A stretch of DNA of 64,000 nucleotides, taken from positions 248,001 through 312,000 of the forward strand of contig MU008160.1 in assembly GCA_010909165.1 (NCBI GenBank), given 5' to 3'. The notes beneath the pieces are model-generated. The model saw nothing but the letters and a program-made list of their open reading frames with translations, had not been told where the DNA came from and did no database searches. The stretch comes from Anthoceros angustus (taxonomy: Eukaryota > Plantae > Anthocerotophyta). The translations under genes and the position numbers were made by a program. This document shows positions 1 to 61,310 of this stretch, in pieces (within the stretch, counting starts at the first letter, position 1; the number at the start of each line of letters is the position of its first letter).

Positions 1-3000
1 AAGTACTCAAGGAAATTAGATGTTGATGACAAAGGCATTTTAAGGTGCACAAATCAATTGGGAGTATGTTCAAAAGGCTCATAGTTCGAGTCCGCCTCAT
101 CGTATCGTTCGAGTTCCCATATGTTCGGGCTTCACGGGTATTGAATGAGCGTATATTAGTGAATAGATTGGGGATTTAGATTTTGATGGGGAGGTGGTGG
201 TTCCGCCTTTTGTGGGCCATATGAAATTCTAATGCCTTCATATAGTTTGCTAATCGTCTAGTTAGCCTTGGTCGATTCTGGATCTGCGGTAGTCACTCGT
301 CTCACCGGTCGAATTTACTTCGTGATTAAACTTCTCTAGAATTCATGCTCTCATTACATTTCTTACTAACAAAGGCGGAGCATGTGCCGAAAGCTCAAGG
401 CCTCCTTGAATATCTACGGAGATTACTTCAAGGATAAGTATGTCTTTGCATTGTTTCCTTGTCCCACGTCTATGTACCCTTTCCTTTCATAAGGCCATTT
501 CGAAGCTCGGGAAAGGATGTTTGCTATGAGGAAGGCTAATATTTGCTTGGGTTTGGTTTGGTTTGGTTTGACTATCTTTGTTTATCCAAAGAAATTTGGA
601 CAAGTGGGAATAGTCGAGGATGTACATGCTACTATCGTTGGCAAAAGTACGGAGGAAACTAGATCAACACTTTAATGACAAAGGCATTACGAATGAAATG
701 AACTAGAAGTATATATGTTCGATTATAAGGGGCTCATGGTTCGAGTCCCGCACCATCGTAAAAATAATTCACACATTATAAGCAAGCCTTGTATATGTTA
801 TAATTAAGACCAAACTCAAACCCCAAGCATTGTATCACATTTTGAAATTTCAAAACCTTCTAACACCGCATACATGACGTATCGCTCATTCTCAATTCCT
901 CATCGATGTCGTAAGATGATATCTATCGTAGCTCATTATTGTCCTCATCTTTTTATTGTCATCCTCGTCTTCGCTTTCGTCCTCATCTTTGCTTTCATCC
1001 TCATCTTCCTTGTCATCCTCGTCTTTGCTTTCATCCTCATCTTCCTTGTCATCCTCATCTTTTCTTTCATCCTCATCTTTGCTTTCATCCTCATCTTCCT
1101 TATCATCCTCATCTTTACTTTCCTCTTCATCTTCCCTTTCGTCCACATCTTCCTCTTCTTCCTTGTTGTCCTCATCTTCCTCTTCTTCCTTGTTGGCGTC
1201 CTCGTCTTGATTCCATGTCCTTCTCATTTTCGCTACCCTCCTCATCTTCCGTAGTCTCTTCATCGATATCCTCTCTACGCATCCTCGTCTTCCTCATCAT
1301 CCGCATCTTCCTTGTCATCCTCATCATCACTATCACCATCATCTTCCATGTCATCTTCATCTTCCTCGTCTTCATCTTCCATGTCATCTTCATCTTCGAC
1401 TACATGTCTTTCATCAATATCCTCATCTTCTATGTCGGTCTTTGGCGCCATTGTATGGCGGTCATATTTGTCGGGCATTGGGGCACCATTGTATGGCAAG
1501 CCATTCTCTTGCACAATATTGGAGCTCGTTTCTTCTAGGAGATGCTACCTTTCCTTGCATAGAGAGCCAACAAGGGATGTTTGATGCGAGGGAGGCTACT
1601 TGCAATTGGTATTGAATAGATTGGGGCACAAGGGGTGATTTTGGGAGCGGTTTTCACTAAAACAGGTTGGGGTTAACGTTTCATCTTGGAAGGTTGATTA
1701 TCTTTGTTTGTCCAGAGAAAGGCTAGACAAGCTATAGCTTGGCATGGTTACATGCTGCTACCATTGGCAAAAGTACTCAAGGAAATTAGATGTTGATGAC
1801 AAAGGCATTTTAAGGTGCACAAATCAATTGGGAGTATGTTCAAAAGGGGCTCATAGTTCGAGTCCGCCTCATCGTATCGTTCGAGTTCCCATATGTTCGG
1901 GCTTCACGGGTATTGAATGAGCGTATATTAGTGAATAGATTGGGGATTTAGATTTTGATGGGGAGGTGGTGGTTCCGCCTTTTGTGGGCCATATGAAATT
2001 CTAATGCCTTCATATAGTTTGCTAATCGTCTAGTTAGCCTTGGTCGATTGGATCTGCAGTAGTCACTCGTCTCACCGGTCGAATTTACTTGATTAAACTT
2101 CTCTAGGGAATTCATGCTCTCATTACATTTCTTACTAACAAAGGCGGAGCATGTGCGAAAGCTCAAGGCCATCCTTGAATATCTACGGAGATTACTTCAA
2201 GGATAAGTATGTCTTTGCATTGTTTCCTTGTCCCACGTCTATGTACCCTTTCCTTTCATAAGGCCATTTCGAAGCTCGGGAAAGGATGTTTGCTATGAGG
2301 AAGGCTAATATTTGCTTGGGTTTGGTTTGGTTTGGTTTGACTATCTTTGTTTATCCAAAGAAATTTGGACAAAAGTGGGAATAGTCGAGGATGTACATGC
2401 TACTATCGTTGGCAAAAGTACCGGAGGAAACTAGATCAACACTTTAATGACAAAGGCATTACGAAATGAACTAGAAGTATATATGTTCGATTATAAGGGG
2501 CTCATGGTTCGAGTCCGCACCATCGTAAAAATAATTCACACATTATAAGCAAGCCTTGTATATGTTATAATTAAGACCAAACTCAAACCCCAAGCATTGT
2601 ATCACATTTTGAAATTTCAAAACCTTCTAACACCGCATACATGACGTATCGCTCATTCTCAATTCCTCATCGATGTCGTAAGATGATATCTATCGTAGCT
2701 CATTCATTTATTGTCCTCATCTTTTTATTGTCATCCTCGTCTTCGCTTTCGTCCTCATCTTTGCTTTCTTCCTCATCTTCCTTGTCATCCTCGTCTTTGC
2801 TTTCATCCTCATCTTCCTTGTCATCCTCATCTTTTCTTTCATCCTCATCTTTGCTTTCATCCTCATCTTCCTTATCATCCTCATCTTTACTTTCCTCTTC
2901 ATCTTCCCTTTCGTCCACATCTTCCTCTTCTTCCTTATTGTCCTCATCTTCCTCTTCTTCCTTGTTGGCGTCCTCGTCTTCTGATTCCATGTCCTTCTCA

Positions 3001-3212
3001 TTTTCGCTACCCTCCTCTTCTTCCGTAGTCTCTTCATTGATATCCTCTCTACCTGCATCCTCGTCTTCCTCATCATCCGCATCTTCCTTGTCATCCTCAT
3101 CATCACTATCACCATCATCTTCCCTGTCGTCTTCGTCTTCCCGGTCGTCTTCATCTTCCATGTCATCTTCATCTTCGACTACATGTCTTTCATCAATATC
3201 CTCATCTTCTAT
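1..3212. repeat. ~1.77-kb direct tandem duplication (1-~1430 vs 1771-~3210)
   Basis: AAGTACTCAAGGAAATTAGA starts at both 1 and 1771. The copies stay near-identical through the acidic repeat tract and differ mostly by 1-3 nt indels. Confidence 0.9.
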
Positions 3213-6200
3213 GTCAGCTTCGTCTTCGATTACATGTCTTCCATCAATATCTTCATCTTCCATGTCATCTTCAACAACGTATATTCCATCGATATCCTCA
3301 TCTTCCATTTCATCGTTATCTTCCACTACATATCTAGTTCCATCGATATGCTCATGATCATCTTCCACTTCGTGTCTTCTATCGATATCCTCGTCTTCCA
3401 TGTCATCCTTGTATTCCAGCACTTCATGGACATGTCTTCCATCAAAATCGTCACATTCTACTACACGTCTTCCACGGGCAGTTGTACCAACTACAAGTTT
3501 CCAAGATTTTTTGGGTATTTTGCATAAAAAGCTCTGCTCCAATTTCGGAGATACCATAACGAATGGTTCGTCTTTCAGCTTTTCTTGAGATAACGTTTTG
3601 TTTGGATTCAACATGACCATACCAGTGGAGTCATCTCTTTTCTCTCCTGTCCTATCCTCATTCCAGGGGGTGTGGAACCACTTTACCTTGAGCACATTTA
3701 TATTTGTAGTAACTCCAAAATCAACTTCATAAATCCTCTCCACTGTTCCAACATACTGAAGTCACACGCAATGGGTTCGGGGTCACCTGTTTTCAATACA
3801 TAGAAATGTATATAGTTGTGTTATGATGCTATCACAAGTTTGTTCCAAAGATCAAGATCCGTCCGAATATGATGTCCATATGCCCACATCATGCTATAAG
3901 AACGCATGATTCAAATGGCCCTCTTACAAGTGCAACCACCTCCTTTCCATATATTTCTAATGCGTTCCCCTTTTAGATCGCTTCCACCTCATCGATTAAC
4001 CACTCCACAAAAGGCGATCTTGATTTCATTGTCATCATATACTTCTTTCCATTGCTTAGTCCACTCCGAGTTCTCTAATATCACTTTCCTCACTTGACTC
4101 CTTTCCATATCCTTGTATTCCAGCACTTCATGGACATGTCTTTCATCAATATCTTCATCTTCCATGTCATCCTTGTAACAACTCCCCACTTTGAGTAACA
4201 TCTTCTTTCATTGTCCAAATCCGTGGAGCTGCATTATGGATATTTCCAAAGAATTCTGAAGAGTAAAACATTTTCTCTTGTGCTAGATATCCTAAAGCCA
4301 TGCTTCCTTCCGGTCGAGCTTTTTGTCGTACAAGGTTCTTTAGCACTTTCATATGTCGTTCAAGAAAATACATCCAACGATAGCGTGTGGGCCCACATAA
4401 TTCAACCTCCGCACGGATGAATAACATGGACACGGCTTGTCGAAATGTTGTAGGAAACTCTCTCTCAAAATGCACATCACCTCCACAATTTTGACCTTCA
4501 TAGCAGGAATCTCATCCTTCACAATTTCTTTTGCGGTAAGCCAACGCATTAGTTCTGCGAGATCACATATAGCCTTATGCACACGTGGATGTATCAACCC
4601 TCTCAAGGCAATTGGCCATATGTCACATAACAAATGATGATGATCATGGGACTTCAGGCCTGGAATTGTCTCTCGTATCCCCTTCTTAAAACAACGTTTC
4701 AAGTTGGACCCATACCCAGTGGGCATACGGATGCTGCAAACCCTTCTCTTCAATTTCTCCAATGCTTTAGGATAAGAATAGTTAGTGCCATGTCCAAGAA
4801 CCCAAGGTGCTGGAGTCCGTATATGCACACGTTCGGCGTTTCCTTCATCAAGCGCATCATCTTGTCCTCTCTTCCTTTTCCTTGATTGCCTAGGCCTAGG
4901 CCCATACTTGGCTTGGGCTTGGCGCCATGGCCCATGGCCCTAGCCCTAGCCCTACCCTTGGGCTTGGGTTTAGGTTGGGGCTGTCCTTGGGCCACCATTC
5001 ACCTTGGTATTTGATAGTTCGAGATCTCTCGACTGCAAGGGTTTCAAACTCCCCACAAATGTGCCTCATAATTTGTTCACTAACGTTCTTTCCAATGTGC
5101 ATGATATCAAACAAGTGTCTAATTAGCAACACTGCAGCCATCACATGCATATTGATGATAATTGTAAGCATTCGATGCTACAAAGTTCTAAAAGCATAAT
5201 CATTTTATAATATATTAAAGTGAAGGATAAAAACGGATCGATACCTACCTCCCAATATGGAAGCTCCCAAAAATTGAAGGTTCATTGCTTGTGACACCCC
5301 AAGGCCTAACAGTCGCCTTAGTTGCGGTTTTCCGTAAAAAACTCTCTCTTACGATAACTGTTGCTGTAGGTTCATCGCTCGGAAGAACACTTGCAGTCAC
5401 AGCACGTCCATCAAATGTGTCCTTCTCTTCCACTCTAAACATGTGTTCCTCTGGCAAGTGCATTCTAGAATTTTTATCATACGTCATTTTTTTAGTGTGT
5501 GGTGATCTGCGTGCTTCAAGTTTATCCCAACATTTTGGACATGCCCGCTTCCCTTTGGTTTGAAGCTTTGAAGTGACCGTATATCCTGGGTAGTCGTGCA
5601 TAGTCCACATCAATAAGGCTTTTAATCTAAATTGTTTTTGAGCATTCCCATCTCCAGCGGAAATATCGTCCACTATTATGCCTTCTTCCCACAATATCTT
5701 CAACTCTTCAATAAGCGGTCGGAAATAAATGTTTGCATTTCTCACTTGCTTCGGACCAGGAATAATCATTCATAATAATATATGTCCATTGCGTATGGAC
5801 ATCCATGGAGGCAAGTTATAATTGACAAGTAGCACTGGCCAAATGGAATATTGAGAACTCTAGTGTCCAAACGGGTTAATCCCATTAGTAGCAAGCCCAA
5901 ATCGAATATTGCGTCTCCATAGCAAACTCTAGAAATGTTTGGTCCACATATTCCCACGCTTGGCTGTCTGATGGTATTCGCATGATCCCATCACTAGACT
6001 TAAATGTTGCATGCCAAGACATCATACTAGCTAGCTTCTTGCACCTAAACATTTGCTTCAACCTAGGAATTAATGGGAAATAACGCAACACCTTCACGGT
6101 ATTTTTTGCCCTTTGTATCCGTTCGTATCTATTTGCCCCACACTTGCAGCACATTAGCGAGGCTGTAGCTCGCCATGAAAATAATAGATCATTTGGACAA

Positions 6201-6603
6201 GCATGTATAGATTTATAAGACAGGCCAAATCCCTTCAATAGTTTTCTTATCTCAGCTCTATTCTTGGGCAACTTGTTGTCAGCGGGGAGTCCTAAGCTCC
6301 CTATTAATTCCAACATAGTATTCATAGATGCATCCGACCAACACTGCCTCCTCTGGACGTTAAGCAATAATAAGGTAAATGACAGCAAATTTGTTTTGGC
6401 TCCGGTCCATAAAGATGTGGTTGCAGCTGTATGCATTCTCTTCAATTCCTTAGGCAAAGAATTTACCTCTTCCTCAGTCATGTCGGCAATACCAGCTACT
6501 CCACCAAGTGCCTCCACCATCTCTATAGCCACTTGTTCATGAGGGTGAATGTATTCGTTTTCTTCCTCATGCATGGATTCACCATGAATTTTTCCCCTTC
6601 AAC
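2700..6603 (-). pseudogene. CACTA TnpD/Tnp2-type transposase (Transposase_21 + DUF4218 + DUF4216-like) with long acidic C-terminal tail; disrupted
   Basis: Motifs read across frames: IHACPND, LRYFPLIPRLKQMF, GLATNGINPF, WPVLLVNYNLPPW, IIPGPKQ, LMWTMHDYPGY, CPKC, LLIRHLFDIMHIGKN, GLKSHDHH, RWMYFLER, KARPEGSMA, LKVKWF, DEPFV. An intron lies at ~5132-5248. There are in-frame stops and frameshifts. Confidence 0.93.
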
Positions 6604-6801
6604 CTAGAATTTTGAGCAAACATACATAACATGTTATGAAAATAAAATAAAATAAAATATATAATACTTTATTATAGGCTAGCTTGACCATGATCTCTAA
6701 AGGATATCAATCACCTAGATAAACTATGTTCAAACTTCAAACACGATGAGGAAAAACTAATATTCACATCATTCACATGTCATGCAAATACTACTCTAAA
6801 T

Positions 6802-7726
6802 CTACATCCTTTTCATCAACTTTTCCTTCATCTTTTCCCACTTCCTTTTCGCATATTCTGCCGTATCTACATACTCCTTTGCATCCGCACCCCTGTCTTC
6901 ATGCATTAACTTTGCCTTCATCTTCTTCCACTCTCTTTGCACATACTCTTTAGTATGCGCATACTCACGCTCTGCAGCCTTTATTCTCGCTATCGCATAA
7001 TTTGGGTCAAACCAATTGTACTCAACAAACAACTCCTCACCGCTTCAATGGTCCGCCGCCCAAGTGCACACCCACATCATGTGGCTATGATGCAATAGCT
7101 CATGCCCATCGTCTCTTCCTCCCATAGGCAGTTACCTTGTTTATCGCTATTAATGTAACTGCCACATTCCCATATGCCACATGCCCATCCAAGTACACTA
7201 TAGGTGACGTAAGCTTCTTACGCCTACATCTGTTGAAAGTTAAGGCATATTTTCGAAACTCTGGCAATCTCCTATACTCCGCAATCTTGTTAAACTCTGC
7301 CTGTGTATACATGGGACCACCAAACACAAATAATGGAACGCCTTTCTTCTGGCTACGACTAACACTTATTTTTTCCAAGGCAAACAAACCCAACCCCATT
7401 ATTGGATTTGTTGCCTCCTTCACTATCCACCAACGACCCCAATATGGAAATGGTTTGTTAATAGGAATGGCCCCCTCCTCCCACATTCCCCACTCCTTGG
7501 GATATACACCTTTGAGAAGACGCTTGTATAACACAACAGCATCATGAGAGTTTGCATCCTCTCCCTCTCGTGGCTGGTAAGGGTGTTCAAGGAAAGGTCC
7601 ACGTGACTCTCCTTTCCACCCAAATTTTTTCCTACTTCGCAGAGACATGTGTCCACAGGTGCGTTCATCATCAGCATCATCAGGATCAAGAGTGCTAACA
7701 TGGTCCTCTATAGGAAGTTCTGCCAA
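6802..7726 (-). CDS. SET-domain (lysine methyltransferase-like) exon inside the CACTA transposase locus; frameshifted as assembled
   Basis: The ORF track gives IVKEATNPIMGLGLFALEKI...KGVPLFVFGG...KYALTF...YLDGHVAYGNVA. After a 1-nt shift it reads YINSDKQGNC, then RTIE-GEELFVEYNW, matching SET motifs GxG, (RF)INHS and ELxxDY. A splice acceptor ttttttgtatAG sits at 7728-7727. Confidence 0.8.
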
Positions 7727-7960
7727 CTATACAAAAAATAATCATCATAAGTACAAACTACATACCATACCAGTTTAACTTACGAAACCATCATGCATCA
7801 ATGACACATCATGCACATTTAAAAGGAGCATGCATATACTAAATCAAATATAAATATATATATTAATATTAAATATGATATACCTTGAATGTATCACGAA
7901 ATAGTGGTTAGAAACTCAATATACATCTCAAATACTTAACCAAAGGGGTTAGAAACTCAC

Positions 7961-8182
7961 GTCATATGCGCTTGCCGTCACGGGTGAGTCTTCACTTGGT
8001 ACGGCCGGGGTTTCTTCCGAACTTGCGCCTCCCTCCGCGCCTCGATATATTCCGTATGTACGCTCATGAATACGGACTTGATTCCCCCGCATAGTCCTTT
8101 GCCCCTTACAGTTTACACAATTACATTTCTCAAAAGCATACTGAACCATTGGTCGAGCACGCTTACGGCCACCTCCGGCATG
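7961..8182 (-). CDS. N-terminal exon of CACTA transposase (transposase-associated CxCxxC...H domain-like)
   Basis: KCNCVNCKGQRTMRGNQVRIHERTYG resembles the CPCxxC...V..H...G N-terminal domain of plant TnpD. The exon ends at donor GAC|GTGAGT (GT at 7960-7959). The start codon is uncertain. Confidence 0.65.
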
Positions 8183-8351: not shown

Positions 8352-8790
8352 CACATAGCACAAATTTCAGAAAGAATTGGGAAGAATTGAGCTGCTACTT
8401 CCATCGAAACTTGACTCCACATAGCACAAATTCCAGAAAGAATTAGGAAGAATTGTGCTGCTATCGCCATCGAGACTTGGTTGCACATAGCACAAATTCT
8501 AGAAAGAATTGGGGAGAATTGTGCTGCTACTGCCATCGAGACTTGGTTGCACATAGCACAAATTCCAGAAAGAATTGGGAAGAATTGAGCTGCTACTTCC
8601 ATCGAGACTTGACTCCACATAGCACAAATTCCAGAAAGAATTGGGAAGAATTGAGCTGCTACTTCCATCGAGACTTGGCTCCACATAGCACAAATTCCAG
8701 AAAGAATTGGGGAGAATTATGCTGCTATTGCCATCGAGACTTGGTTGCACATAGCAATTGGGAAGAATTGGGCTGCTACTCCCATCAAGA
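8352..8790. repeat. 66-bp tandem repeat (~6.5 copies) in the 5' region of CACTA A
   Basis: Unit CACATAGCACAAATTCCAGAAAGAATTGGG...CATCGAGACTTG; the ORF track shows 22-aa periodicity. Confidence 0.9.
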
Positions 8791-8934: not shown

Positions 8935-9446
8935 CCTTGCTTGGCGAGCCCCGCCGAAATCTGGCCCAATCCACGAGATCGATCCCTTGCTTGGCGAGCC
9001 TCACGGCGAGCCTCGCGGCGAGCCTCGCGGCGAGCCCAATTCCTTGGCGAGCCTCACGAGCCCAATTCCTTGGCGAGCCTCACGGCGAGCCTTGCGGCGA
9101 GCCTCACATGAGCCCAATTCACCTTGGCGAGCCTCACGGTGAGCCCAATTTCTTTGCTTGGCGAGCCTCGCGGCGAGCCCAATTTCTTTGCTTGGCGAGC
9201 CTCGCGGCGAGCCCAATTTCTTTGCTTGGCGAGCCTCGCAGCGAGCCCAATTTCTTTGCTTGGTGAGCCACACGGTGCCGCATGTATGTGCCTATTACCA
9301 TATGCGGATATGGTATACCATATATGGATACGGTATACCAATACGGTATATTTTTGAGCACATATTACAACGTCCAAAATGTGCTTTACAACCTCATGCG
9401 TTGTAAAGCACGTTATGGACGTTGTAAATGACTTATTCTACTAGTG
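8935..9446. repeat. CACTA subterminal repeats (GGCGAGCC array; GTTGTAAA/TTTACAAC motifs) and terminal TAGTG
   Basis: Dense (TT)GGCGAGCC units at 8935-9270, TTACAAC/GTTGTAAA in both orientations at 9365-9430, TAGTG at 9442-9446. Confidence 0.85.
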
Positions 9447-10884: not shown

Positions 10885-11335
10885 TCATGCGTTGTAAAGC
10901 ACGTTATGGACGTTGTAAATTGCATTTATAGACGGGTTACATCCACGTGTCAAGCATGTGTATACAAGCAAGCATACAGGATTGTAAAGCACGTTATGGA
11001 CGTTGTAAAGCACGTTATGGACGTTGTAAAGCACGTTATGGACGTTGTAAAGCACGTTATGGACGTTGTAAAGCACGTTATGGACGTTGTAAAGCACGTT
11101 ATGGACGTTGTAAAGCACGTTATGGACGTTGTAAAGCACGTTATGGACGTTGTAAATTGCATTTATAGACGGGTTACATCCACGTGTCAAGCATGTGTAT
11201 ACAAGCAAGCATACAGGATTGTAAAGCACGTTATGGACGTTGTAAAGCACGTTATGGACGTTGTAAAGCACGTTATGGACGTTGTAAAGCACGTTATGGA
11301 CGTTGTAAAGCACGTTATGGACGTTGTAAATTGCA
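10885..11335. repeat. 21-bp tandem repeat GTTGTAAAGCACGTTATGGAC
   Basis: Perfect 21-bp units in two runs; the same motif occurs near the terminus at 9400-9428. Confidence 0.9.
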
Positions 11336-33010: not shown

Positions 33011-33937
33011 GGAGTGTCACTATTGTCACAAAGGGTCACTTCAAAGAGAGTGCGAGAAGTTCAAAAGGACCAAGGAAGAAGAAGAAGAAGCGGGGGCGAC
33101 AAGAAGGCGACTTGGTTCGAGTTGGAAGAGTTAAACTCTGTTGAGGACGGAGATGTCCTTATCTCTTCTTACTTGAATCTGCAATTAACCCGTGGATAGT
33201 CATTTATTACGCAATTGGATAATTGACTGGTGCATCTTTCCATGTTACTCCTCATAGAGTGGTTTTACGTATGATGCTACAAGGAAAGGATGCGTTAGGC
33301 TTGGAAATAACTATGCATGCGGATCGCGTGGTGATGTGCAACTCAAGTTTGACAACGGATCTTCATTCATCTTTGAAGGGCGTTAGGCATGTTCGAAGTT
33401 GACAAAGAGCATGATTAGCGCGGCGGTTGGATGATCTTTGGTTACCACTTGGTTTGGGGATCACTCTTGGAAGATCTCCAAAGGTTCTCTTGTGTTAGCT
33501 CGTGGATCGAAGTGTGGCACTTTGTACTCACTTGTAAACCATCAAAAGATCATGTGATCGTGGGCAGCCAAATGTTTCCTTGTGGCATTGCGGTTAGGAC
33601 ATATGTCTCGAGAAGGGAATGAAGGTTTTATCTCGTTACGGTTATATCCTGTTCTTAACTTCTCGATCTCTCGATGTGTGAGCCTTTGTTTATATGGGAA
33701 GCAGACAAAATCATCACATCGAACAAGAGGTAAAAGTAGGAGTAAACCTCTTGAGTTGGTTCACGATGATGTATGTGGACCTATGCCTCTTGCATCATTA
33801 GGCGGTGCCTCTTATTTTGTCACTTTCATAGATGATTTCTCACGCAAGGTGTGGGTTTATCCTTTGAGGAAAAAGGATGAAGTTACGGTGTTTGAAATTT
33901 GTCACCCTTGTAGAGAATCGATGCCACGATTGAAGTG

Positions 33938-34378
33938 TCTATATATGTGTAGATATATGTATGTGTAGATATATGTATGTGTAGATATATGTATGTGATA
34001 TTTATACATGTGGCATGCATATATGTGTAGATATATGTATGTGGTATTTATACATGTGGCATGCATATATGTGGCATGCATGTGTGGTGTGTATGTATGG
34101 ATGTAAGTACATATATGTGGCATGCATGTATGTGTAGATATATGTATGTGTAGATATATGTATGTGATATTTATACATGTGGCATGCATGTATGTGGTAT
34201 TTATACATGTGGCATGCATGTATGTGTAGATATATGTATGTGTAGATATATGTATGTGATATTTATACATGTGGCATGCATGTATGTGTAGATATATGTA
34301 TGTGTAGATATATGTATGTGATATTTATACATGTGGCATGCATATATGTGGCATGCATGTGTGGTGTGTATGTATGGG
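33938..34378. repeat. Low-complexity TATG/GTAG/GCAT microsatellite-like tract interrupting the integrase
   Basis: Directly visible. Confidence 0.9.
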
Positions 34379-56638: not shown

Positions 56639-57639
56639 CTATGTCCAACGGGAGGGCCAATATGCATGAATCTGGTAACCTGTCTTCCAATTGTCCAAAA
56701 ACATGACTGCCCGGACGGCCCAGAAGCAGACTGTCATGCCGACCACCATGACAGTCCGCTGCACCATCCTGGACCTGAGCCGGACGACGAAATGGCTCAC
56801 GGCAGCCACAGTAACCCTGACAAGAGTGTAGAGGAATCCGACCACAAAGCCCTCAGCTCCGAGCATGCCAGACTGCTGGTAGAAGAACAGCAGCTTCCCG
56901 GGATTGCTCCGATCCGGCATGAAGAGCGGCATCCCGCGGATGATGTTAAACATGCCGCCGGAGACGCTGAAGAAGTAGATCAAGAGCGCCCCTCCGCACC
57001 ACACCTCCCGCTCATGCAGCGGCGAGTTCGGCGCCATAAGCATCTTCGCCACGAAGGAGCGGCCACCAGCAATCCTCCCGCCAGAACAATCATCTGCTGC
57101 GCGACACCAGCGGCGGCCGCTGAATTTGCCCTACCTTGAACCCGGTGCGCCTCCACGAACGCCGCGATGCTATCTGCAGGGACATGTCCCCGGCTCCGCG
57201 GCATGGCTCTGCTTCAGCTCCACCTTACCTGGGGCAGGTGCCGGATGCTCGGCAGCGAGTTCACTCCGAACAAGGCAAAGCTCCCGGGACTCTGCTTGAA
57301 CTCCATGTCCACGAAGAAAACCTTGAAGCCGCCGGCTGGTCCTGGTTGTGCTTGGCATAGGATGTGGCGACCAGACCGAACTCCCGCCTCAACTCCTCCA
57401 GCTTCAGCCCGTCTTCTCCGCAGCTGCAGCGCATCGAAGAAGAAGATGAGCGAGTACGGCCGGCCCTCAGGCTGCATCGCAAACCTCCTCAGGCCGCCAT
57501 CATCCAGCCGGATCACGCCGTCCGCCGCCTGCTCCTGCTGCAGTAACAGATCCGCAATGCGATCGTCATTGCTCTCGGCCGCGGCAAACGCCTGGGCCGC
57601 TAGCAGCAAGGCCGCCACAACCAAAGCCGTCCTCCACAT
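56639..57639 (-). CDS. Oligosaccharyltransferase subunit OST3/OST6, copy 1 (intronless; frameshifts likely errors)
   Basis: Signal peptide, GVIRLDD, RPYSLIFFFDA, FALFGVNSLP, YFFSVSGGMFNIIRGMP, GAEGFVVGFLY, LDNWKTGY. Confidence 0.85.
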
Positions 57640-60298: not shown

Positions 60299-61310
60299 CT
60301 ATGTCCAACGGAGGCCAATATGCATGAATCTGGTAACCTGTCTTCCAATTGTCCAAAACATGACTGCCCGGACGGCCCAGAAGCAGACTGTCATGCCGAC
60401 CACCATGACAGTCCGCTGCACCATCCTGGACCTGAGCCGGACGACGAAATGGCTCACGGCAGCCACAGTAACCCCGACAAGAGTGTAGAGGAATCCGACC
60501 ACAAAGCCCTCAGCTCCGAGCTGCATGCCAGACTGCTGGTAGAAGAACAGCAGCTTCCCGGGATTGCTCCGATCCGGCATGAAGAGCGGCATCCCGCGGA
60601 TGATGTTAAACATGCCGCCGGAGACGCTGAAGAAGTAGATCAAGAGCGCCCCTCCGCACCACACCTCCCGCTCATGCAGCGGCGAGTTCGGCGCCATAAG
60701 CATCTTCGCCACGAAGGGAGCGGCCACCAGCAATCCTCCCGCCAGAACAATCATCTGCTGCCGCGACACCAGCGGCGGCCGCTGAATTTGCCCTACCTTG
60801 AACCCGGTGCGCGCCTCCACGAACGCCGCGATGCTATCTGCAGCCCGGGACATGTCCCCCGGCTCCGCGGCATGGCTCTGCTTCAGCTCCACCTTACCCG
60901 GGGGCAGGTGCCGGATGCTCGGCAGCGAGTTCACTCCGAACAAGGCAAAGCTCCCGGGACTCTGCTTGAACTCCATGTCCACGAAGAAAACCTTGAAGCC
61001 GCCGGCTGGTCCTGGTTGTGCTTGGCATAGGATGTGGCGACCAGACCGAACTCCCGCCTCAACTCCTCCAGCTTCAGCTCCGTCTTCTCCGCAGCTGCAG
61101 CGCATCGAAGAAGAAGATGAGCGAGTACGGCCGGCCCTCAGGCTGCATCGCAAACCTCCTCAGGCCGCCATCATCCAGCCGGATCACGCCGTCCGCCGCC
61201 TGCTCCTGCTGCAGTAACAGATCCGCAATGCGATCGTCATTGCTCTCGGCCGCGGCAAACGCCTGGGCCGCTAGCAGCAAGGCCGCCACAACCAAAGCCG
61301 TCCTCCACAT
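60299..61310 (-). CDS. Oligosaccharyltransferase subunit OST3/OST6, copy 2
   Basis: Same motifs as copy 1, including QSGMQLGAEGF; ATG at 61310. Confidence 0.9.

Follow-up and report, generated by a model that had tools for sequence, protein, structure and literature searches.

A SET-domain exon in a CACTA transposon lineage and its decayed copy in Anthoceros angustus

The DNA analysed here is a stretch of 64,000 nt from Anthoceros angustus (assembly GCA_010909165.1, contig MU008160.1, positions 248,001 to 312,000 of the forward strand; referred to below as the window). On its minus strand lies a copy of a CACTA/EnSpm transposon in which an exon with SET-domain motifs is placed between a zinc-finger (ZnF) exon and the Tnp2 transposase. 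It is almost certain that this copy is a dead member of a SET-bearing CACTA lineage of liverwort-type plants. As far as sequence comparison can tell, the SET exon is a transposon-borne module: it is co-oriented with the transposase, it is kept in loci L003, L006, L008, L009, L010 and L014, and the proportion of nonsynonymous differences (pN) in it is far below that of synonymous differences (pS). The SET exon is probably an alternative terminal exon within intron 1 of the transposase gene and not an internal part of the transposase. The window copy itself is dead and can encode neither a ZnF-SET protein nor a transposase, since four or more frame changes and a stop codon interrupt its SET exon and its transposase is frameshifted too.

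Conservation of the SET exon and identity of its fold

Those relatives that have a species name belong to two liverworts, Riccia sorocarpa and Calypogeia fissa; the remainder were found in Logan assemblies and metagenomes. The order of ZnF exon, SET exon and Tnp2 on one strand is present in two Riccia sorocarpa subfamilies (subfamily 1, L003 and L008; subfamily 2, L006 and L007), in the Logan locus L009, in the Logan loci L010-L012, which represent one sequence (99.9% identical), and in the metagenome contig L014. A decayed SET-then-Tnp2 order is all that remains in L013, where no zinc-finger exon was found. Two of the loci, L010 and L014, are apparently intact, with an open SET exon and transposase open reading frames (ORFs) of 372+648 and 368+334+321 codons, respectively. 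Protein identity to L010 is similar for both parts of the element, with 34-57% for SET and 38-59% for the transposase.

The selective constraint on the two parts was compared by pN and pS between deep lineages, in which synonymous sites are saturated. For L010 and L014, the SET core yields a pN of 0.28 and a pS of 0.70 (p 2e-15) and the transposase exon a pN of 0.27 and a pS of 0.76. The corresponding values for L008 and L009 are 0.18 and 0.84 in the SET core and 0.23 and 0.73 in the transposase exon. To judge from these values the SET core is under purifying selection, with a constraint equal to that on the transposase exon. The recent Riccia copies L003 and L008 have a ratio of nonsynonymous to synonymous substitution rates (dN/dS) of 0.60, which is calculated from 27 differences, too few to inform. 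An earlier note on this DNA, made from the window sequence, had proposed that the SET exon is a trait of the transposon family and had named neutral evolution of this exon as a counter-argument; the shared order in the Riccia, Logan and metagenome loci and the transposase-like, non-neutral pN/pS values agree with that proposal.

CACTA elements capture gene fragments. A host SET fragment might accordingly have been picked up by the window copy alone, in the manner of a Pack-CACTA, or be joined to it by an assembly chimera, and have no role; the pseudogene state of the window's SET exon would fit such a one-off event. However, at least five diverged lineages, which come from other species and samples, have the module in the same position, the SET exon is constrained at the level of the transposase, and no canonical host SET class is present among 33 matches of the phmmer search described below. 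Because the order is kept across lineages and the SET core is constrained like the transposase, we regard a one-off capture or a chimera as excluded for practical purposes.

Two observations concern the liverwort genomes themselves. Calypogeia fissa contains SET relatives at L004:10001-11512 and L005:10001-13589 (P0021/P0045 with 503/506 aa, a single exon and a Cys-rich N-terminus, and P0015/P0043). No Tnp2 similarity was detected within 10 kb of them, and the genes around are ordinary ones (FtsH protease, CLP protease). These copies may be solo or domesticated, or they may represent the source of the transposon's SET domain. In Riccia sorocarpa a second C-terminal transposase fragment is located at L008:3030-4318, approximately 6 kb upstream of the SET-bearing copy, which suggests nested or adjacent elements.

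For the identification of the fold, the 208-aa frame-A piece of the window (7103-7726, minus strand) was compared by an exhaustive phmmer search with 1.84 billion representative proteins. It gave 33 matches, the best at 4e-20, and connects the window piece with the SET family members at E-values of 4e-20 to 1e-3; a word-indexed protein search with the same piece gave no match. A Pfam scan of the window's own SET pieces resulted in no SET match either, which speaks against the assignment. Since the window pieces give no direct Pfam match, the SET reading rests on the relatives, and it is there that profile matches were obtained: Pfam SET (PF00856) is matched in 16 of the 24 family members of alignment A1 (best 1.3e-8), and the gathering score of 22.4 bits is exceeded by P0007 (29.9 bits) and P0053 (31.6 bits).

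For P0053, an intact relative, the AlphaFold model reaches a mean predicted local distance difference test score (pLDDT) of 82.5. Foldseek found 337 PDB matches for this model at E<=1e-3, and all matches listed are SET methyltransferases, among them SETD8, LegAS4, ATXR5 and MLL1 (E ~1e-7), also G9a, NSD1 and others. In VIA-align the model superimposes on EZH2, Set1, SET7/9, SET8 and ASH1L over 120-136 residues with Z-scores of 11-12, and no class stands out. A sequence-profile search of the PDB gave weak SET matches only (E 0.04-0.7), and a language-model look-up pointed at SET clusters, which is weak evidence. By the predicted structure the SET fold of the family is settled, the assignment having been made on the intact relative P0053 and not on the window copy.

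The catalytic motifs are partly kept. GxG is present as GLGLF throughout the family (GLGLFA in the window), the Asn in GN(I/V)AG is retained (N184 of P0053), and so is the final Tyr of GEELxxxY, which aligns with the second Tyr of EELLYDY in SETD8. Most relatives contain PYxG at the YxG position, where the window and P0003 have FGG. In the cofactor motif NH(S)C, the NH dyad has given way to YINS in the window lineage and to YIQS in Riccia; the family consensus is GNIAGYINS. Since the His of the cofactor motif is missing and Phe takes the place of the Tyr of YxG in the window lineage, catalysis is uncertain. Both exchanges count against an enzyme, and we judge the chances that the family's SET domain is an active methyltransferase to be balanced.

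The domain might instead be a catalytically dead SET fold that is conserved for binding or as a decoy, e.g. for histone tails or S-adenosylmethionine, which would be compatible with the other readings given here. In addition to the absent His and the FGG of the window lineage, the switch position ahead of the catalytic Tyr can be C, V, S or F, and the weak sequence-profile matches in the PDB point in the same direction. The retained GxG, Asn and final Tyr, and the alignment of the P0053 model with active enzymes over the 120-136 residues given above, speak against a dead fold. We consider it a real possibility, yet one with a probability somewhat below one half.

Exon wiring and alternative gene structures

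Exon junctions were read in five loci (L003, L008, L009, L010 and L014), and the exon 3 acceptor was also read in L006. In all five loci the GT donor of exon 1, the polypyrimidine-AG acceptor of the SET exon and the acceptor of exon 3 are canonical and in phase 0; the exon 3 acceptor of L006, from Riccia subfamily 2, is in phase 0 as well. The homologues of the window's intron 1 have the same position and phase and a length of 99-135 nt. Exactly at this intron the NCBI models P0010 and P0048 splice the ZnF exon to the SET exon. To this extent the earlier proposal of a SET exon joined in frame to the N-terminal exon of the transposase is supported. In the relatives the SET exon ends in a stop and is located between exons that are contiguous in canonical CACTA elements, so that it looks more like an alternative terminal exon than like an internal part of the transposase.

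The SET frame closes with a stop in every lineage read, 2-12 codons past GEELxxxY(x)W; in the window lineage the tail is longer and charged. In the relatives, the stop is separated from exon 3 by 153-695 nt, which end in a strong acceptor, again in phase 0. The AG of this acceptor belongs to an in-frame TAG in L010 and L014, so that there the frame of exon 3 opens exactly at the acceptor. In both Riccia subfamilies the first Met of exon 3 comes only after a motif that every lineage retains (EVLADFIETY / AILAEFFNM), which reads QVAIEMVEAL in the window. Hence, translation of the Riccia transposase must begin further upstream. In canonical angiosperm CACTA transposases (PF13963 + PF02992), residues 35-82 correspond to the zinc fingers of exon 1 and the homology to exon 3 starts at residue 85-206, depending on the protein. 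The alignment contains nothing SET-like between the homologues of exon 1 and exon 3 in these proteins. Thus, a splice from exon 1 to exon 3 would restore the canonical protein in frame.

Since the SET exon ends in a stop, the three junctions are all in phase 0 and canonical transposases join the homologues of exon 1 and exon 3 directly, we favour, with slightly better than even confidence, alternative splicing from a shared first exon to either a ZnF-SET protein or a ZnF-transposase. One primary transcript would be processed into two forms. Joining of exon 1 to the SET exon with its stop would result in a small ZnF-SET protein, whereas skipping of the SET exon and joining of exon 1 to exon 3 would result in the canonical ZnF-transposase, and both products would have the same N-terminal zinc finger. 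The ZnF-SET protein could then go where the N-terminal domain of the transposase goes and methylate lysine there, in a histone or another protein, and this methylation would regulate the chromatin state of the element or its transposition. That a land-plant CACTA element in this way uses alternative splicing to produce a chromatin writer directed at itself and so determines its own chromatin state, for anti-silencing or self-limitation, is a tentative proposal that we consider rather doubtful in its entirety.

Several observations weigh against the shared-exon scheme. The phase compatibility comes from a common ancestor, so the lineages are not independent tests of it. A Met 20-25 codons past the exon 3 acceptor in L010, L014 and L009 would permit a separate start there, and the NCBI models of Riccia include SET-transposase fusions. 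Every match of exon 1 to Transpos_assoc (PF13963) is below the curated cut-off of 27.7 bits: the window reaches 16.9 bits (E 0.0074), L010 15.2 bits and L009 14.3 bits, each over the same region 30-64 of the HMM. The exon 3 junction of the window copy is beyond reconstruction, because the candidate acceptor AG at 6605-6604 is followed by a TGA at 6601-6599 that shuts the transposase frame. Global nucleotide identity of spacer versus exon 3 did not discriminate.

A single ZnF-SET-transposase polypeptide would require an internal SET exon whose stop after the SET domain is spliced out. SET is connected with transposase sequence in the NCBI Riccia models P0048, P0051, P0052, P0054 and P0047, the parts are co-oriented, and the distance from the SET stop to exon 3 is short. 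As read from the sequence, the window would have a frame-compatible pair of sites for such a splice, a GT that overlaps the stop (AT|GTAGAT, ~6805) and an AG at 6597-6596. However, five or more different donors are paired with a single acceptor region in these models, and most of the models delete the C-terminal catalytic motif, which P0051 keeps; such donor scatter is typical of ab initio predictors around stops. Since the annotation of Riccia sorocarpa merges cDNA-based and ab initio predictions (PMC11735767), single models from it are no evidence of splicing. A GT/AG scan of L008, L009, L010 and L014 detected frame-compatible GTs only inside the SET domain and no donor past the catalytic Tyr that is compatible with the strong exon 3 acceptor. 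Moreover, no SET match longer than 503 aa was found among the 1.84 billion representatives, save one low-complexity false match. A fused polypeptide is therefore quite improbable in our view. Two genes, i.e. a ZnF-SET accessory gene followed by an independently transcribed transposase without a Transpos_assoc domain, are unlikely, too. This arrangement is how L003 is annotated (P0010, then a Transposase_21 gene); it would make use of the Met in exon 3 mentioned above, and some CACTA transposases in the databases have no PF13963 match. The Riccia spacer described in the next paragraph could likewise mark an internal control region. Against two genes, exon 3 starts at a strong acceptor where the frame opens exactly in L010 and L014, conserved residues lie ahead of its first Met in both Riccia subfamilies, and all three junctions are in phase 0. 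In addition, there is no second zinc-finger exon between the SET stop and exon 3, and in canonical relatives the homologue of exon 3 follows immediately on the zinc finger.

Both element ends of the Riccia relatives have subterminal repeats of the TTCCGACA type, with the repeats of one end oriented oppositely to those of the other. In subfamily 1 the spacer (L003:11250-11580, L008:11290-11440) contains about nine TCGGAA/GTCGGAA motifs complementary to the 5' subterminal repeats of this type. We take these motifs to resemble the CCGACA core in the binding site of maize TnpA; by their sequence they could serve as binding sites within the element or form an internal control region.

The window copy and its surroundings

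The features of the element in the window are compiled in the table.

Features of the CACTA copy in the window (positions of the 64,000-nt stretch)
Feature	Position	Strand	Basis
CACTA/EnSpm (Tnp2) element copy	8800 to ~2700	minus	
66-bp subterminal repeat array, 6.1 copies	8352..8756	.	Tandem Repeats Finder (91% matches), self-BLAST
Exon 1, zinc finger (CNCVNCKG...H...YG), Transpos_assoc-like	7961..8182	minus	Pfam PF13963, below cut-off
Intron 1, 234 nt, GT...AG, AT-rich	7727..7960	minus	sequence
SET exon, pseudogene in this copy	6802..7726	minus	three-frame translation, tblastn, phmmer, Pfam and fold of relatives
AT-rich spacer, probably remainder of transposase intron 1	6575..6801	minus	sequence
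Transposase N-terminal (pre-core) region, homologue of exon 3 of intact relatives	5888..6574	minus	tblastn, blastp
Transposase_21 (Tnp2) core pieces	5248..5957	minus	Pfam PF02992, ORF list
C-terminal transposase pieces and acidic D/E-repeat tail	2703..4828	minus	tblastn, ORF list
Tandem duplication of the element's 3' part	1..3215	.	self-BLAST

Exon 1 ends at ...GCA TAT GAC | GTGAGT with 7963-7961 as the final codon and a phase-0 donor, and its frame terminates in ...VTASAYD. The SET exon begins at 7726 behind a phase-0 acceptor (...ttttgtatAG | TTG GCA GAA, LAELPIEDH...) and ends with TAG at 6804-6802. At the level of the sequence, donor, acceptor and the resulting junction ...SAYD|LAELP... 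are as claimed in the earlier note. The SET motifs listed there are also present in the order given, i.e. GLGLFA, LFVFGGPMY, YGNVA, YINSDKQGNCLWEEE (in another frame) and GEELFVEY, though across frames. When relatives are aligned by tblastn, the reading path leads from frame A (7726-7160, ...YGNVA) to frame B (7166-7104, YINSDKQGNCLWEEE), frame C (~7100-7066, HMMWVCT), again frame B (~7063-7043, RRTIEA) and finally frame C (7041-6802, GEELFVEY..., TAG). In addition to these frame changes an in-frame TGA is located at 7047-7045 (frame C), and the frame is not intact. The stretch that is broken in the window is continuous in P0003 (GNVAGYINSS...NALWEE).

The closest relative of the window's SET exon is L001 (Logan SRR33208241, 1188-2490) with 48% protein identity. 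It is a pseudogene as well, interrupted by one stop and one frameshift, and has no transposase similarity in the 650 nt after the SET exon. An interpretation of L001 as a spliced transcript without intron 1 was rejected: tblastn places the zinc finger at 1188-1271, and since an intron-sized gap separates it from the SET exon, L001 is ordinary genomic DNA.

The motif of exon 1 is a C-x-C-x2-C ... H ... YG zinc finger. The exon aligns with residues 39-82 of the canonical transposase P0086, and the zinc fingers match residues 35-82 of this protein with E-values of 1.5e-4 to 0.018. Just upstream of exon 1 lies the 66-bp array, a subterminal repeat array of the kind that CACTA elements have. The transposase is identified by a match of 5248-5769 (minus strand) to Transposase_21 (PF02992) at E 1.9e-25 and 89.8 bits (cut-off 28.6). 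It is spread over three frames (6574-5888, 5957-5766 and 5769-5248) that form a single ORF in L010 and L014; ORF 1959-3077 of L010 is the uninterrupted counterpart. The region 5888-6574 has 35% identity to L003 (E 9e-37, tblastn) and matches canonical TnpD proteins with E-values down to 9e-32 (blastp). A second ORF of L010 (3243-5189, Pfam DUF4218/DUF4216) maps onto 2703-4828 of the window with 33-46% identity (tblastn), and the C-terminal pieces in this range gave no direct Pfam match.

By self-BLAST, window positions 1-1436 are 97% identical to 1771-3215; the transposase end with the acidic tail and sequence beyond it are duplicated. The window begins inside this repeat of the element's 3' part. 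The 3' end of the element is not defined and may be positioned off the window or be masked by the duplication. On the other side, a search for terminal inverted repeats detected no inverted partner within the window for CACTAGTAGAATAAGTC at 9446-9430 (minus strand). An array at 10982-11330 consists of 16 copies of a 21-bp unit, TTGTAAAGCACGTTATGGACG, which also occurs singly at 9408-9427 and 9365-9384, beside the CACTA at 9446-9442. The region from 9.6 to 13.7 kb is a patchwork of repeats with 87-96% identity.

Further features of the window lie at a distance from the element. Two copies of a GC-rich, seemingly intronless ORF of ~280 codons are located at 60299-61153 and 56639-57639 (both minus strand). 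One copy is intact and the other is split, and by eye only they are similar to OST3/OST6-type membrane proteins. An ORF at 33582-33968 (plus strand) has, again by eye only, the look of a retrotransposon integrase core (...VHDDVCGPMP...YFVTFIDDFSRKVWVYPL...) and is flanked by simple repeats.

Related systems and significance

Full-text searches found no literature on a land-plant CACTA element with a SET exon. The supposition of the earlier note that the architecture is undescribed can be maintained in this form for plant CACTA elements, but SET genes have already been described in other DNA transposons, including one group of the EnSpm superfamily. This group is Plavaka, whose accessory gene PAG2 in the red alga Bostrychia moritziana encodes SET (PF00856) and a DNA methylase (bioRxiv 10.1101/2025.02.11.637652). 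Like the lineage described here, Plavaka thus provides an EnSpm-superfamily element with a SET domain. It differs in that DNA methylase and SET belong to a separate accessory gene of giant elements of 17-19 kb, whereas the window lineage has a transposase of the land-plant Tnp2 type and a small ZnF and SET product, with no DNA methylase domain. SET genes are also reported in Helitron captures (bioRxiv 10.1101/2025.02.11.637652). HarbingerS elements and MuDR families of Phytophthora contain SET genes as well (Kojima & Jurka 2014, as cited in PMC12730594). These elements are members of other superfamilies (PIF/Harbinger, Mutator) in other hosts (oomycetes and others), and according to the citing text their SET is an accessory gene, whereas the SET of the window lineage is an exon that lies within transposase intron 1 and follows a shared zinc-finger exon.

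In maize En/Spm, TnpA and TnpD are produced from one transcript by alternative splicing, and the regulator TnpA acts at the subterminal repeats. The scheme proposed for the window lineage would be similar in that alternative splicing yields two proteins from a single transcription unit. TnpA is not a SET protein, and the shared first exon of En/Spm is non-coding, whereas the shared exon of the window lineage would encode a zinc finger. In SETMAR (Metnase) of anthropoid primates, a host SET gene captured a mariner transposase, and the resulting gene is domesticated and single-copy. SET and transposase are connected in one gene through splicing in SETMAR as in the window lineage. In the latter, however, the SET domain is part of a multicopy mobile CACTA lineage and is probably not fused to the catalytic transposase core.

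To our knowledge, transposon proteins that act on the epigenetic state of their own element are few, with VANC as the sole known experimental case and TET/JBP and SET proteins being mostly predicted. The anti-silencing function of VANC proteins from Arabidopsis VANDAL elements (Mutator) was shown experimentally (Hosaka et al. 2017, as cited in PMC12730594), and TET/JBP genes are present in Kyakuja-Dileera-Zisupton and Plavaka elements of fungi (PMC12730594). As presented in this source, VANC and TET/JBP are likewise encoded by transposons and are thought or shown to act on the epigenetic state of the element, with other folds and another chemistry than SET. Bryophyte transposons are reported to be marked by H3K27me3 besides H3K9 methylation (bioRxiv 10.1101/2022.10.24.513474).

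The lineage is also relevant to genome annotation, as predictors yield assorted and inconsistent SET-transposase 'genes' from the elements of Riccia sorocarpa. For the biology of the family, the finding is a SET module that purifying selection has maintained within a transposase gene of plant CACTA elements and that is apparently wired to share the zinc-finger exon of this gene. If the proposed function were true, these elements would provide a directly testable bryophyte case of a mobile element with its own histone or lysine methyltransferase.

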